Below are positions 22,621 through 53,364 of a stretch of DNA of 64,000 bases, piece after piece (the stretch's first letter is position 1; each line of letters begins with the position of its first letter). The notes beneath the pieces are model-generated. The model was not told where the DNA came from. It searched no databases and saw only the letters and a program-made list of their open reading frames with translations. Where the stretch lies: assembly GCF_963853765.1 (NCBI RefSeq), contig NC_088859.1, positions 12,648,001 to 12,712,000 of the forward strand, written 5' to 3'. Origin of the DNA: Magallana gigas. Lineage: Eukaryota. The position numbers were made by a program, and so were the translations under genes.

Positions 22621-23050
22621 AAAACCAAAGTTATCTGTTCAGTACAACTTATTAAGCATTGTTAAACTTACTACATAAATAGTTGCACGTTTTTACAACG
22701 CATGCAACAACTGGGCCAGTATCATATGTAAAGTATGCAATTTGAGGGTACTAGTATTCTAAATAGTACCACAAGTTTTTTAAACCGTTTAGATGATAAT
22801 GTTAAATTCCAGCCGTTATATTATTCAAGTAATACTTTCTTTTTATATTTTCAGTGAAATGGAGATGAAAAGAGTAGATTTTCTGTACGGTGTGATGTTT
22901 CTATCCATTGTCCTGCTTTTGTCATTATTCCTTCAAGTCTATGGGTATTTGGACGCACAGACATACGCTTTAGTTACAGCTAAAAGTTCCTTTTACGAAT
23001 TCTCAACAGAACCCATTCCTGTCTATACGTATTAAGAAGCCTTTTATATT

Positions 23051-23590
23051 ATTGTTATACTTTCATGTTAAATACTGAAATCTGATTGGTTAAGACGCAG
23101 TTCATAATCCGTTCTATTACCCTCAGCTTTAGCAACGCACTTAGCAACGGGTAACATTATATAAATAGTGCCTGTTTGGGAAGGTAACAGTTGAAGTTGA
23201 CACCCCGAGAAAACCATTGTCAACCGACGCGAAGCGGAGGTTGACAAAGGTTTTCGAGGGGTGTCAATTTCAACTGTTATCCTCCCAAACAGGCACTATT
23301 TATTTTGTTAAACTGAATGTCTTAATTTTAAAGAACATTTTACTGCTTTTATATAGGAATAACGTGAATTCTACAGCGAACCGTACGCGCATAATTTTCG
23401 CGCATGTAACAATTTTTAATGTTACCCGTTGCTAAGTGCGTTGCTAACGCTGAGGGTAATAGAACGGATTATGAACTGCGTCTTAGCCAATCAGATTTAA
23501 GTATTTAACATGACAGTATAACAATACAAATTGTTTCATGAGCGAAAATTATGCGCGTACGGTTCGCTGTAGAATTCACGTTATTCCTAT
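23051..23590. mobile_element. 540-bp non-autonomous element with interleaved inverted repeats (A-B-B'-C-A'-C'), inserted in copy 1
   Basis: A 23051-23159 / A' 23417-23525 (109 nt); hairpin B/B' 23161-23303 centred on acgcgaagcgg; C 23353-23406 / C' 23537-23590 (54 nt, 1 mismatch). Absent from copies 2 and 3. Confidence 0.85.
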
Positions 23591-24792
23591 TATATTACAA
23601 CGCTACCGTCCGTATTTTCCGTATCACTGCATGGTTTGTTTAATTCCATGCGTTCTAAGATACGCCTACAAGACGGCCAATATTTCGGATGATATCATGG
23701 CTCAAGTGGAGTGGAAACGAATTGGTTTGATCATATTCTCAATTCGTCGTTTATATTCTCTTGCCCGCTGTTTGAGCTCCGAAAATACACGTTTTGGAAA
23801 CTTGTGTTGTACATATTTGTAACTGTTACAGTGATCTATGCATTGATGGTAACATACATATTTTATGTCTTCTGTAGTAATCGTGTTAATTTTTTTTAGG
23901 TTGTAAAGAAGAACAAAGCAGATTTTTTGACAACATGGTATTTTGATGAACCATTATCCAGTGGATTAAATGTGAGTGAGTTTAACGTGTATGAAGAGAA
24001 TTTTAGTCTAGACCGAAACTTATTTCATCGCACAGGGCAGAAAATTTATCAAACCGTAGTTTCCCGGAGATATAAGGAAATGGATATTGCAGGAGAAATT
24101 ACTTCATATCAGCGGAAAACGTATTTGGCCGGGATCGGCGAGAGTGTGAGCTTGTATTGTGGTGCAGTAGTTTCATATAATCCAATAACTGTTTTGTGGT
24201 CCTTCAACAAAAGTCTTCGTTTCAATGACAGTTTTCGTACCACAAAAACGTATATTGAAGAACGGTCGACGGAACGTGAAATAAGTAGTGATTTAAATGT
24301 AAACTTCATAGAAGACACTAATTTTGGGATTTTTACATGTTCTTTGGAAACTTATCAATTTTCTGTTGAAAAAGTGTATTTGCAACACAATTTGGCGGCT
24401 TCCGCATACATAACGCATACATAACGCGTACTCGAGACATTATTGCTCAGTACAACGTAAAAAAGTACTTTGGAAAAGAGTTTTACATCTATACAAGGTG
24501 GAGTGATTGATCTCAGATGGAGACCAATGAATTTCAGTAATGAAAACGAAGACTTGATTCAATATTATTATGTGAATAAAGTTGCATTTAATCGACCACA
24601 AAATTCTGGATAGTTATGTTCAACTTTTTCGTCTCTGTATATGTTATATGGACAAACACTGAATATGTTCTTGGTTCTATACGATTCGACGTTTTCTCAG
24701 TTTTGGACGAAAACTCATAAATATTCGTTTGAAACCCGTTTTACTGAATGTGTTGGAACTGAGGTATTTGGAATTCACACTGTTGTAAATTT

Positions 24793-50394: not shown

Positions 50395-51042
50395 ACCGTA
50401 ATTTAGATAAGTTTCTGCTTTTTATGGTTTATATAGTTCTTTGTGCTAAATTTTATCAATGGTATTATATTCTATAACTATATCATTAAGGCGTAATTCA
50501 GTAGTTCAACTTTATAGCGTAAGAGTTGATTTTGCCTCATTGACTTTTATCATTTGAACCCACCAGTAGAAAAATACCGAGCTACAGTAAAACCGTTGAA
50601 TTTGAACTGACGCATGTCAAAATTTGAAAATACTGCAAATTTTATCTTTTTATTAATAGATCTGTTTATGGTATTGTTACGTTTTATAAAAATCATTGTC
50701 AATTTTCTATCTGTATAACGATTTCTTTTACGAATCTAGGCTTAAAATACTTGATGATTTGCAATCAAAAGCGTCTTGAAATGAAATAGAACAACCACGC
50801 TCGTCTACCCTTTATTGAGCGGCTTCCTTTGCATCCGATGTTTGTATGGTGACGGCATTCTAACTTTCTGTACAGTGCACATCTGACGATTAATGGTATT
50901 GTTTTATTCTCGCAACCATTGTGTTTATCTATTGAGTTTTTGAATTATCAGATATTGAATACTCAGTGAAATATATGGCATATTCTTACAAATACCTTGG
51001 ACTCACTTAATATTAGTCTTTTTGATTTATCATTCACAGACA

Positions 51043-53364
51043 ATGAAGATGAAAAGGATAGATTTCATGTACGGTGTGATAACTTTAACAGCGTTTTTGC
51101 TCTTGCCAATATTCCTCAAAATCTATGGATACTTGGACCAACCGACATATGTCTCAGATATTCATAAGAACTCATTCTACGAAAATTCAATGGAAACCAT
51201 TCTTGTATATTCGCATTACAAATATTTTGTATTTGCTATATATGGCATCTTATTAATCATGTGCTTAAGTTTGATATTGTCATCTTTCATGAATCGAATT
51301 GCACGTTATCAAATTCAATGTTACCGTTTGTATTTCCCATATCATTGTACTGTTTGTGTTATTCCATTTGTTCTAAGATACACCAACATAACTTCCACCA
51401 TATCTGACGATATTATGGCTGAAATGGATTGGGAAAGTTTGTTCCTGATAATATCTTTTATATTTCGGTTTATCTTATCTTTTTTTCTGTTTATTATACA
51501 AAAGTACAGATTTTGGAGGTTAGTGTTATATGTGTTAATGACAGTGATTCATTGTTTAATAATCGCATACATTTTGTATATTCTGTGGACGAATGGTGTA
51601 GACCTGGTAAATACTATTAAGAAAAGAAAAGGAGATTTTTTGACAGATTGGTCCTATGTTGATCACGAACCATTAACAGAATTTAATGTGAGTAAGCTAA
51701 ACACATATTCAAAATATTTTGGTCTTGACCGGAATTTATTTTTGAAAACAGGACGAAAATCCTATCAAACTCATTATTTACTAAATTCGCAATTAAAAGA
51801 CGGTCATGGAATAACACGACCATATCAGCAAGGAGTATATCTTGTGGGAATTGGCGAGAGTGTCAAACTGCCTTGTGGTGCCATTGTTAATACTGAAGCC
51901 CCAATGACTGTCTTATGGTCTTTAAATGGGAGTTGTCCTCATTCAAATTTTACTTTCAGTTTCAGCAGAGAAAGAAGAATTTCGTCCTACATTATTAACA
52001 CTGGACTAGACATTGATTTGATCGAAAATTCCAATTTTGGAGACATCACTTGCTCTTTCCGGTTTTATGAGCATTTCGGTAACAAACTGTATTTTCAGCA
52101 CAAAATGGCCTCGTCTTTCATCGAAAGTAACGAACTCCTTATTGCTCAGTACAGTGTGAGAAAGTACTCTGGAAGGGAATTCTATATTTATGCAACACCA
52201 GGTGGAGCGATTGATATCACATGGAAACGAATGTCATTTAATAATGAGGTAGAAGATATAATTCAATACTATTACATAAATGGGGTCCCAATTAATCGAC
52301 CAAAATCATCTTCGTTGTTTTGCTCAAGTTTTTCATATCTATACATTCTATATGGACATGCAATGAAATGGTTTTTTGTTCCGTACCTTTTGGAGTCACC
52401 TCATTTTTTGCTTAACAGTTTAAGTGTCTTTGAAACTCACTACACCGATTGCGCGGGATCTCATGTTTTTGGAATACACACTGTTGAGTATTTTCGTCGA
52501 GTTTACGATAAAAAGAGTGGATCTTTTATCTTACAAGAAGTTCAGCATCCAGACACGATCTACGTACTACCAGATACGGCATACTTCTACAAGATGGACA
52601 ACGCATCAAAGGCAAAAAAGAAGGAAATCATACAAAATCTACAAAAAATGAATTTGGATTATACATGGTTTGACAATAGCGATACCTGTATTTTGATAGC
52701 ACGTGTTGTTCTCGAAATGATAGTTTTAGCAACTTCGTTTTTACTGTATACCTATTTTGTGTATAAATGTTGGAATTGGTACGGGCGCAACGTACTTCAA
52801 CCGATCAGAAAAATCATATTAGGACCACCAATTGATAAAATCGATGAACAATACCCAGCTATAAAGTGTAGTACGTCATACTCCTGTTACGTTTTCTGTG
52901 GTCATTCTGATATGCAGTCGGTTTATGATCATCTCGTTGTTCCACTGAGAAAAGAACAAGTTACAACTGGTTTTATTTTCGAGGAATGTTTGATAAACAG
53001 AAGTGGAAAGTCAATATTTGATATACATTATGACCTGCTTGAAAAGTGTGAGCATTTGATATTTTATTTGACTTCCACATATTTAGAGGAGGAAAAGTTT
53101 GTTGATATTCAGTTAGAAACCGTTCTCCAGTGTATCAAAATGGGTTTCATTTCTACAAATAGAGTGCTCATAATAATTGCAGACAATTGCGAACTACCGG
53201 AAAAATTACGATATAACTTACCAGAAGCAGCTGCACAAATCCATGACTGGGTGACAGTAAAGAATCAAAATAAAAGAATAAACCTTGTTTTAAAGTGGAT
53301 AAATGGCTTGAAGAAGAATCCTCAACATAAAGATGAAGTGGTATCTACGGTGTTTCTTGGATAA
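51043..53364 (+). CDS. Copy 3 (intact): 773-aa predicted polytopic membrane protein with ~5 TM, Ig-like domain, degenerate Ig-like repeat, TM and C-terminal TIR domain
   Basis: Uninterrupted ORF; cag acceptor 3 nt before ATG 51043 (the conserved MKRIDF Met is at 51049). Ig hallmarks GESVKLPC...VLWSLNG...FGDITC; TM ILIARVVLEMIVLATSFLLYTYFV; TIR-like SYSCYVFC..SD...YDHLVVPL...SGKSIF...CEHLIFYLTSTYL...VLIII. AATAAA at 53390. Confidence 0.93.
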   Translation: MKMKRIDFMYGVITLTAFLLLPIFLKIYGYLDQPTYVSDIHKNSFYENSMETILVYSHYKYFVFAIYGILLIMCLSLILSSFMNRIARYQIQCYRLYFPYHCTVCVIPFVLRYTNITSTISDDIMAEMDWESLFLIISFIFRFILSFFLFIIQKYRFWRLVLYVLMTVIHCLIIAYILYILWTNGVDLVNTIKKRKGDFLTDWSYVDHEPLTEFNVSKLNTYSKYFGLDRNLFLKTGRKSYQTHYLLNSQLKDGHGITRPYQQGVYLVGIGESVKLPCGAIVNTEAPMTVLWSLNGSCPHSNFTFSFSRERRISSYIINTGLDIDLIENSNFGDITCSFRFYEHFGNKLYFQHKMASSFIESNELLIAQYSVRKYSGREFYIYATPGGAIDITWKRMSFNNEVEDIIQYYYINGVPINRPKSSSLFCSSFSYLYILYGHAMKWFFVPYLLESPHFLLNSLSVFETHYTDCAGSHVFGIHTVEYFRRVYDKKSGSFILQEVQHPDTIYVLPDTAYFYKMDNASKAKKKEIIQNLQKMNLDYTWFDNSDTCILIARVVLEMIVLATSFLLYTYFVYKCWNWYGRNVLQPIRKIILGPPIDKIDEQYPAIKCSTSYSCYVFCGHSDMQSVYDHLVVPLRKEQVTTGFIFEECLINRSGKSIFDIHYDLLEKCEHLIFYLTSTYLEEEKFVDIQLETVLQCIKMGFISTNRVLIIIADNCELPEKLRYNLPEAAAQIHDWVTVKNQNKRINLVLKWINGLKKNPQHKDEVVSTVFLG

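Follow-up and report, generated by a model that had tools for sequence, protein, structure and literature searches.

Animal receptors with a Toll/interleukin-1 receptor (TIR) domain described so far, namely Toll-like receptors (TLRs), IL-1 receptors (IL-1Rs), and the cnidarian and Hydra TRRs, are, to our knowledge, single-pass membrane proteins. A locus in the genome of the oyster Magallana gigas raises the question of whether a TIR protein may instead begin with a module that crosses the membrane several times. The locus lies within 64,000 nucleotides of contig NC_088859.1 (assembly GCF_963853765.1, positions 12,648,001 to 12,712,000 of the forward strand); this whole stretch is referred to below as the window, and its first letter is position 1. 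A first-pass annotation, made from the letters of the window alone, had described here a tandem family of intronless genes encoding five transmembrane (TM) segments, an immunoglobulin (Ig)-like region, a sixth TM segment, and a TIR-like C-terminus.

Our analysis points, with a probability that we put at roughly 0.7, to a mollusc-restricted family of membrane proteins composed of five TM helices, an Ig domain, a second Ig-like sandwich, one further TM helix, and a cytosolic TIR domain, that is, to an IL-1-receptor-like (Ig-TIR) receptor in which a conserved polytopic membrane module takes the place of the signal peptide.

Three collinear paralogues, one of them intact

The copy count is based on a tblastn search of the window with the intact protein of the third copy, together with a listing of open reading frames (ORFs). 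As had been proposed, there are three collinear paralogues, and exactly three, all on the + strand: copy 1 (22859-26092, broken frames), copy 2 (35087-37399, passing through frames 2, 3, and 2), and copy 3 (51043-53361, 100% identity in one frame). When all 564 Mb of the assembly were searched in six frames, no fourth copy appeared at E ≤ 1e-5, with such counts being lower bounds. Only copy 3 is intact among the three, copies 1 and 2 being pseudogene-like. Residue numbers below refer to copy 3 unless stated otherwise, and the coordinates of all features are given in Table 1.

A predicted polytopic module at the N-terminus

The Kyte-Doolittle profile of the copy 3 protein peaks at residues 5-31, 57-88, 129-155, and 156-189, and again at 545-574 (TM6). 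An AlphaFold model of the N-terminal module, obtained in a separate run from an alignment of 35 sequences, places helices at residues 8-31, 57-83, 98-116, 130-154, and 156-207. The hydrophobic segments listed in the first-pass annotation, once shifted by seven residues from the ORF track to the initiator Met at 51043, fall at 10-28, 61-83, 98-113, 133-152, 160-182, and 550-573, and they match both the hydropathy peaks and the modeled helices. The third segment had been flagged as weak; it indeed lies below the hydropathy threshold in copy 3, yet it is modeled as a helix. The model also contains a beta-hairpin at residues 34-56, within the acidic loop 1-2, and TM4 and TM5 are joined by a basic (K/R)Y(K/R)FWR hairpin loop.

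In a set of 14 homologues, successive segments carry net charges of +1.1 in the N-terminal tail, -2.6 in loop 1-2, +3.5 in loop 2-3, -2.6 in loop 3-4, +3.0 in loop 4-5, -2.9 after TM5, and +3.3 after TM6 (residues 573-600). This strict positive-inside alternation fits a predicted topology in which the N-terminus is inside, five TM segments lead to an ectodomain outside, and TM6 leads to a TIR domain inside, consistent with the 5+1 arrangement that had been suggested, which places the basic KYRFWR loop in the cytosol. The five helices and the alternating loop charges also bear out the expectation that a signal peptide alone does not account for the N-terminus. N-glycosylation sequons are found as originally listed, at N115 (NIT, 11 of 14 homologues), N215 (NVS, 10 of 14), and N520 (NAS, 13 of 14); along with N295 and N302, these are conserved sequons in the parts predicted to lie outside.

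More than 25 homologues, distant ones included, retain the whole module. Distant clam and snail relatives have three to five N-terminal hydrophobic segments, and have in common a Y(G/K/R)(W/F)xR motif ahead of the last such segment. The ratio of nonsynonymous to synonymous substitution rates (dN/dS) of the module ranges from 0.16 to 0.53 in comparisons with three relatives and the orthologue of a paralogue (dS up to 1.1), indicating a selected coding sequence rather than a leader.

We were unable to relate the module to a known fold. Foldseek searches with its AlphaFold model, a check that had been recommended, yielded no significant match in the PDB (best E 1.2) or among the AlphaFold DB clusters (best E 0.098, TM-score ≤0.29). 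Similarly, VIA-align against 48k PDB representatives gave a best Z of 7.8, which is below the noise level of that tool for helical bundles, a search of the ESM Atlas gave TM-scores of at most 0.33, and an ESM Atlas feature search with residues 1-215 returned no usable match. Since the confidence of the model is moderate, the lack of a match in these searches means that the fold is not recognizable, rather than that it is proven to be new. GPCR, TRP, Der1, and spectrin rows in the fold searches were rejected as relatives and attributed to generic helix packing. Pfam matches across the 35 module sequences were likewise discarded as inconsistent transmembrane-bias noise, the best being DUF6796 (5 of 35 sequences, E 0.0028).

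Two Ig-like domains and a TIR domain

The Ig-like region anticipated in the first-pass annotation was recovered by sequence and by structure. In its first unit, C278, W292, and C337 are invariant in a 22-sequence alignment, with the motif FGDITC preceding C337. Pfam Ig_3 matches 11 of 14 homologues and ig matches 9 of 14, while the family Ig profile matches VEGFR1 (E 1.6e-6), VEGFR2, and antibody domains in the PDB. Model residues 252-376 superimpose on the I-set domain of Lrig3 with Z 9.6 and a root-mean-square deviation (rmsd) of 2.2 Å. This unit thus has the features of the immunoglobulin superfamily, namely a beta-sandwich with a Cys-Trp-Cys core and a DxGxYxC-like motif.

Conservation in the ectodomain is highest in the second unit, where C427 and C470 are invariant. 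The model of this unit aligns to an antibody VH domain (Z 8.4, rmsd 3.0 Å, 99 residues), model residues 252-511 align jointly to two-Ig tandems, and the unit sits where the membrane-proximal Ig of IL-1R family models lies. A profile of this domain found no sequence match in the PDB or in Pfam; as modeled, the domain is Ig-like.

The C-terminal domain is securely a TIR domain, by fold and by sequence similarity, in agreement with the earlier prediction. The model of residues 612-755 matches the TIR of Hydra TRR-2 with Z 14.8 and an rmsd of 2.4 Å over 125 of 125 residues, and it also matches MyD88 (Z 13.8), C. elegans TIR-1 (Z 13.2), and TLR1 (Z 13.0). We built a C-terminal family profile from 22 sequences and searched it against PDB sequences, where it matched 68 TIR sequences at E ≤ 1. 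The best of these were TLR6 (3.2e-13), TLR1 (8.7e-13), Hydra TRR-2 (2.6e-12), and TLR2/15 (7.9e-12); IL1RAcP (3.1e-10), MyD88 (~3e-8), SIGIRR (5e-8), and IL1RAPL were weaker, and the plant RUN1 and Roq1 TIRs were also among the matches. Distant homologues exceed the Pfam cut-offs (TIR_2, 52.4 vs 28 bits; TIR, 40.4 vs 21.3 bits), and the C-terminus of copy 3 alone is sub-threshold for Pfam TIR (16.2 bits, E 0.0096). By profile score, the domain thus appears closer to the plasma-membrane TLR type than to the TIRs of IL-1Rs; the lower rank of IL1RAcP, SIGIRR, and IL1RAPL relative to TLR6, TLR1, TLR2, and HyTRR-2 points to a TLR-like TIR within a convergent architecture.

One position in this domain deserves attention. 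The BB-loop of copy 3 reads EECLINRSGKS, with its Ser aligned to the Pro of PGKS in TLR6 and TLR1 and to an Ala in TLR3. Copy 3 hence lacks the conserved BB-loop Pro (RDxxPG) of signaling TLRs. The replacement by Ser, or by Cys in some relatives, extends throughout the oyster clade of the window, whereas PG is kept in relatives from Mercenaria, Ostrea, and several members of the snail clade.

Homologues and phyletic range

Sequence searches recovered 33 close homologues with 44-93% identity, nearly all of ~760-790 aa and most from public run assemblies. Among them are two named proteins, LOC128167432 of Crassostrea angulata and LOC130054258 of Ostrea edulis, both annotated as "uncharacterized". 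Using phmmer exhaustively, we also retrieved full-length relatives with 22-28% identity. For some of these the source could be assigned as Ostrea edulis, Mercenaria mercenaria (a clam), or Pomacea canaliculata (a snail), and these too are all "uncharacterized". A distant member of the family is likewise encoded by one uninterrupted ORF on its contig, adjoining a paralogue. Word-indexed homologue searches with two further alignments gave almost no new taxa, and the range seen here, which takes in oysters, Mercenaria, Pomacea, and further contigs, is a lower bound. Pfam scans detect neither the Ig nor the TIR domain in many family members, such that domain-based surveys of immune repertoires would probably overlook the family.

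The C-terminal ends of the two clades differ. Snail-clade relatives (P0116, P0102, P0111, P0113, P0114, and P0115) have an extra hydrophobic segment at the extreme C-terminus, after the TIR domain, which would anchor that domain in the membrane at either end. In the oyster clade, the protein finishes instead with a short conserved VSTxFLG tail (window 53341-53361).

Gene structure, transcription, and selection

The claim that the genes are intronless was accurate for the coding sequence (CDS) of copy 3, which is a single exon, and missed an intron in the 5' untranslated region (5'UTR). The RNA-library contig X9 carries 34 non-matching letters immediately 5' of position 51040, of which 30 map to 46761-46790 with one mismatch (0 expected by chance). 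A splice donor, GTAAGT, starts at 46791, and a polypyrimidine tract followed by a cacAG acceptor ends at 51039, 3 nt before the ATG. Copy 3 therefore consists of a non-coding exon 1, a ~4.2-kb intron, and one coding exon. Acceptor-like sequences also stand directly upstream of the ATG in copies 1 and 2, and no duplicate of the 5'UTR exon of copy 3 was found upstream of either. The assembly contains two gaps (N runs) at 49765-49961 and 50214-50394, 650 bp or more upstream of the copy 3 ATG. We considered whether they interrupt the gene and rejected this, as both are inside the 5'UTR intron; the continuity of the CDS is independent of them.

Copy 3 is transcribed. Contigs from RNA libraries (two RNA-seq runs of one study) cover 50943-53336, and the flank at 53442-53792 and most of the upstream flank are empty. 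A Logan contig from a close relative (L001, ~95% nucleotide identity) is collinear with copy 3 from codon ~72 through the CDS and ~300 nt of 3'UTR. Its first ~80 nt (L001:1-90, compared with window 51043-51260) are unmatched in the window, giving a 701-aa product without TM1, and this divergence may reflect a different 5' structure, another allele, or chimerism of the contig.

Two side observations concern the RNA data. A contig from run X2 (depth ~3) has an extra T after 51635, within the copy 3 CDS, which is either a low-depth assembly or read error or a frameshifted allele in that sample. Downstream of copy 3, reads or contigs in all four RNA runs begin at 53860 (53860-53900), with unrelated sequence before this point and at greater depth than copy 3 itself; the boundary resembles the border of a dispersed repeat or that of a different transcript.

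Every domain of the protein is under purifying selection. The dN/dS of the copy 3 CDS is 0.32-0.39 relative to its relatives, and that of the TIR domain is 0.20-0.25. Compared with the intact orthologue of copy 2 (L005:678-3002), dS is ~0.25-0.27 in TM6 and the TIR domain (52684-53313) and 1.1-2.0 in the N-terminal module and ectodomain. This pattern suggests that gene conversion homogenizes the 3' end among paralogues, rather than stronger constraint alone.

Copies 1 and 2 and the intervening sequence

Copy 1 is a pseudogene. It shows several frame changes and many internal stops, its homology is lost around residues 75-90, and it terminates prematurely, at what corresponds to residue 747. 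The segment corresponding to residues ~480-562, which comprises the stretch just before TM6 and TM6 itself, is ~258 bp long and present three times in tandem (window 24770-25543); two of the repeat units give identical 73-aa ORFs (24893-25114 and 25151-25372). The C-terminal ORF of this copy still matches Pfam TIR with E 2.7e-4.

Copy 2 is closer to completeness. Outside a shifted part, its protein is ~95% identical to P0013, an intact relative of 774 aa encoded in a public assembly. Relative to P0013, it lacks 14 bp just after 35431 and 1 bp within the A-run 35787-35791. The two deletions together shift residues ~116-238 to another frame, and the starting frame stops after ~116 residues. The 14-bp deletion is unlike a typical homopolymer error.

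The window is AT-rich (~29-39% GC). Between copies 2 and 3, a 183-aa ORF on the - strand (40911-41459), in a locally GC-richer stretch, has a weak Pfam RVT_1 match (E 2e-4, below cut-off) and is probably a retroelement fragment. A repeat of ~500 bp with 69-76% identity occurs at 22116-22612 (-), just upstream of copy 1, inverted with respect to 42000-42505, downstream of copy 2; several overlapping alignments suggest that it is internally repetitive.

Table 1 Features of the locus, in window positions, with the basis of each assignment
Feature	Positions	Strand	Basis
Copy 1, decayed paralogue (pseudogene)	22859-26095	+	tblastn high-scoring segment pairs in frames 2/3/2, stops within matches
Copy 2, near-complete paralogue, broken in this assembly	35090-37402 (ATG 35090, stop 37402)	+	tblastn with P0013 and site inspection
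Copy 3, non-coding first exon, 3' end	46761-46790	+	5' end of RNA-library contig X9 maps there
Copy 3, 5'UTR intron, ~4.2 kb, containing both assembly gaps	46791-51039	+	donor, acceptor, and contig X9
Copy 3 CDS, intact single-exon ORF, 773 aa + stop	51043-53364	+	ORF listing, tblastn, RNA-library contigs
N-terminal module, residues 1-190	51043-51612	+	hydropathy, AlphaFold model me96dc5e1be00, loop charges
TM1	51070-51132	+	
TM2	51217-51288	+	
TM3 (weak)	51334-51384	+	
TM4	51433-51498	+	
TM5	51520-51597	+	
Ig domain 1, residues ~252-376	51796-52170	+	Pfam in homologues, profile, structure match
Second Ig-like beta-sandwich, residues ~378-514	52174-52584	+	model alignment
TM6, residues ~548-572, then basic juxtamembrane stretch	52684-52758	+	hydropathy peak 545-574; model helix 548-592
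TIR domain, residues ~612-757	52876-53313	+	family profile and structural match

Possible function and alternative explanations

The domain make-up suggests a receptor or regulator that acts through TIR signaling. In such a scheme, the Ig ectodomain would engage a ligand or partner, either extracellularly or within a lumen; the six-helix membrane core would then cluster or rearrange, bringing the TLR-type TIR domains together; and the assembled TIRs could recruit TIR adaptors and thereby start or modulate NF-kB-type signaling. Expanded MyD88-like and orphan TIR genes have been described in oysters (PMC4346834). For the N-terminal module, candidate roles are oligomerization, trafficking or retention, and sensing. 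A more ambitious proposal, which we regard as doubtful, is that its five helices and TM6 form a six-helix device that senses or gates (lipid, ion, or membrane stress), or else an obligate oligomerization core, coupled in either case to TIR assembly. If true, molluscs would possess a class of polytopic TIR receptors of their own, without counterpart in the TLR, IL-1R, and SARM families.

Several observations weigh against the 5+1 Ig-TIR receptor. A Pfam scan of the copy 3 protein returned no family at E ≤ 1, and phmmer with the same protein against PDB sequences returned nothing at E ≤ 10; with these direct searches empty, profiles built from homologues were needed. The RNA support for copy 3 consists of low-depth contigs and sparse raw reads. 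Within the module, TM3 is weakly hydrophobic, the confidence of the model is moderate (pLDDT 71, pTM 0.48), and the full-length model is poor in that region. A conserved sequon is also found in the cytosolic BB-loop, at N652 (11 of 14 homologues), making sequon conservation weak evidence for topology. Finally, TM1 may be a cleaved signal peptide, judging from G29 at -1 and I27 at -3, in which case the mature protein would have 4+1 TM segments in the same orientation.

Some of these points would also suit an ordinary single-pass Ig-TIR receptor whose mature form lacks the module altogether, either because translation starts downstream or because TM1 is a signal peptide followed by a non-functional leader. 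Besides the weakness of TM3 and the low-confidence N-terminus of the full-length copy 3 model, the product of L001, which diverges at codon ~72 and is without TM1, can be cited for this. We nevertheless consider it very improbable: the ORF is continuous from an ATG 3 nt after a confirmed splice acceptor; the module displays low dN/dS, conserved motifs, and alternating loop charges; and a cleaved leader would not be conserved at full length in so many homologues, distant ones included.

Accepting an Ig-TIR protein with a polytopic module, its TIR domain could still work in other ways. The loss of the BB-loop Pro means that the clade of the window may use a different adaptor or act as a SIGIRR-like regulator, since this residue is needed by TLR2 and TLR4 for MyD88 signaling: TLR4 P712H and TLR2 P681H abolish signaling, and the TIR of SIGIRR is itself deviant. 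A negative regulator or decoy, sequestering TLR or MyD88 TIRs at the membrane, would accord with the substitution by Ser or Cys throughout the oyster clade, distant members keeping PG, and with the presence of SIGIRR among the profile matches. However, the family aligns at this position to the Ala of TLR3, which still signals via another adaptor, and the strong purifying selection on the TIR domain fits either role; on balance, a purely regulatory function seems to us rather unlikely. Less probable still is a TIR domain that cleaves NAD+, like those of the SARM1, plant, or bacterial type, which would make the protein a membrane-anchored sensor that triggers NAD depletion or the production of signaling nucleotides. 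The scaffolding TIRs of TLR1, TLR2, TLR6, TLR10, and Hydra TRR-2 score 5-8 orders of magnitude better than those of NAD+-cleaving enzymes, even though the SARM1 orthologue TIR-1 of C. elegans matches strongly in structure and RUN1 and Roq1 appear among the profile matches. Copy 3 does have a Glu (E692; relatives have E or D) in the helix that follows the conserved TSxYL motif, at the location of the catalytic Glu of these enzymes, but several non-enzymatic TLRs carry a Glu at the equivalent place, which deprives the residue of diagnostic value.

Polytopic Ig-TIR proteins that are conserved, under selection, and transcribed would give lophotrochozoan innate immunity an additional receptor architecture, in a system where oysters are already noted for large and inventive TIR expansions. 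In aquaculture species prone to mass mortalities, a new candidate immune receptor or regulator is useful as an expression marker and as a target for knock-down. The module itself is also an attractive subject for structure determination, as a compact membrane domain of helices to which four structure libraries offered no match.

Comparison with known systems

We compared the family with the systems that it resembles most. A Foldseek search against Swiss-Prot AlphaFold models returned IL-1 receptor family members as its top 26 matches, over query residues ~260-773 and with E down to 2.5e-12; the TM-scores of these matches are low (0.12-0.15) because inter-domain orientations differ. Like the vertebrate IL-1 receptor family (IL1R1, IL1RL1/ST2, IL1RAP, IL18R1, IL1RAPL, and SIGIRR), the oyster proteins have an Ig ectodomain, one TM segment, and a cytosolic TIR domain, in this order. 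An IL-1R is a type I protein that crosses the membrane once, loses its signal peptide by cleavage, and usually bears three Ig domains. The oyster family differs in having a five-helix module, with four or five additional hydrophobic helices between the N-terminus and the ectodomain, before two Ig-like domains, and in a TIR domain that is nearer in sequence to those of TLR1, TLR2, TLR6, and Hydra TRR-2. We know of no IL-1-like ligand in molluscs.

TLRs and Hydra TRR-2, a membrane TIR protein without leucine-rich repeats (LRRs), provide the best TIR matches by both sequence and structure. The oyster protein differs from them in having no LRR ectodomain, in the Ser that replaces the BB-loop Pro in the clade of the window, and in its polytopic N-terminus. 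A further likeness, by analogy only, is to complexes in which an Ig ectodomain with one TM segment stands beside a helical membrane bundle, such as embigin or basigin with MCTs and neuroplastin with PMCA; indeed, Foldseek matches of the ectodomain include MCT2-embigin and PMCA-neuroplastin structures. There, the bundle belongs to a transporter of known fold that is a polypeptide of its own, and no TIR domain is present, whereas the oyster bundle is fused in cis, has five helices only, and resembles no transporter.

The closest existing category is the invertebrate "IG-TIR" class of oyster, Aplysia, amphioxus, and cnidarian proteins, with which the family shares Ig and TIR domains in one membrane polypeptide. 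Members of the class are recorded in both Crassostrea gigas and Aplysia (PMC4346834, PMC9334734), and invertebrate Ig-TIR or IL-1R-like proteins have been discussed as convergently evolved (PMC2858798, PMC7075850, PMC9020223), a convergent architecture being reported for cnidarian IL-1R-like proteins (PMC7075850). The catalogues of the class are Pfam-based and describe a signal peptide or a single-pass layout, unlike the arrangement proposed here. The view that this is not an already characterized family stood up: every homologue named in its source is "uncharacterized", and in the searchable literature, which did not cover the bivalve TIR catalogue of Gerdol et al. 2017, we found the generic "IG-TIR" label and no description of a polytopic Ig-TIR or multi-pass TIR protein. 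Overall, the family fits the recognized invertebrate Ig-TIR class, and the polytopic N-terminal module is its new part.

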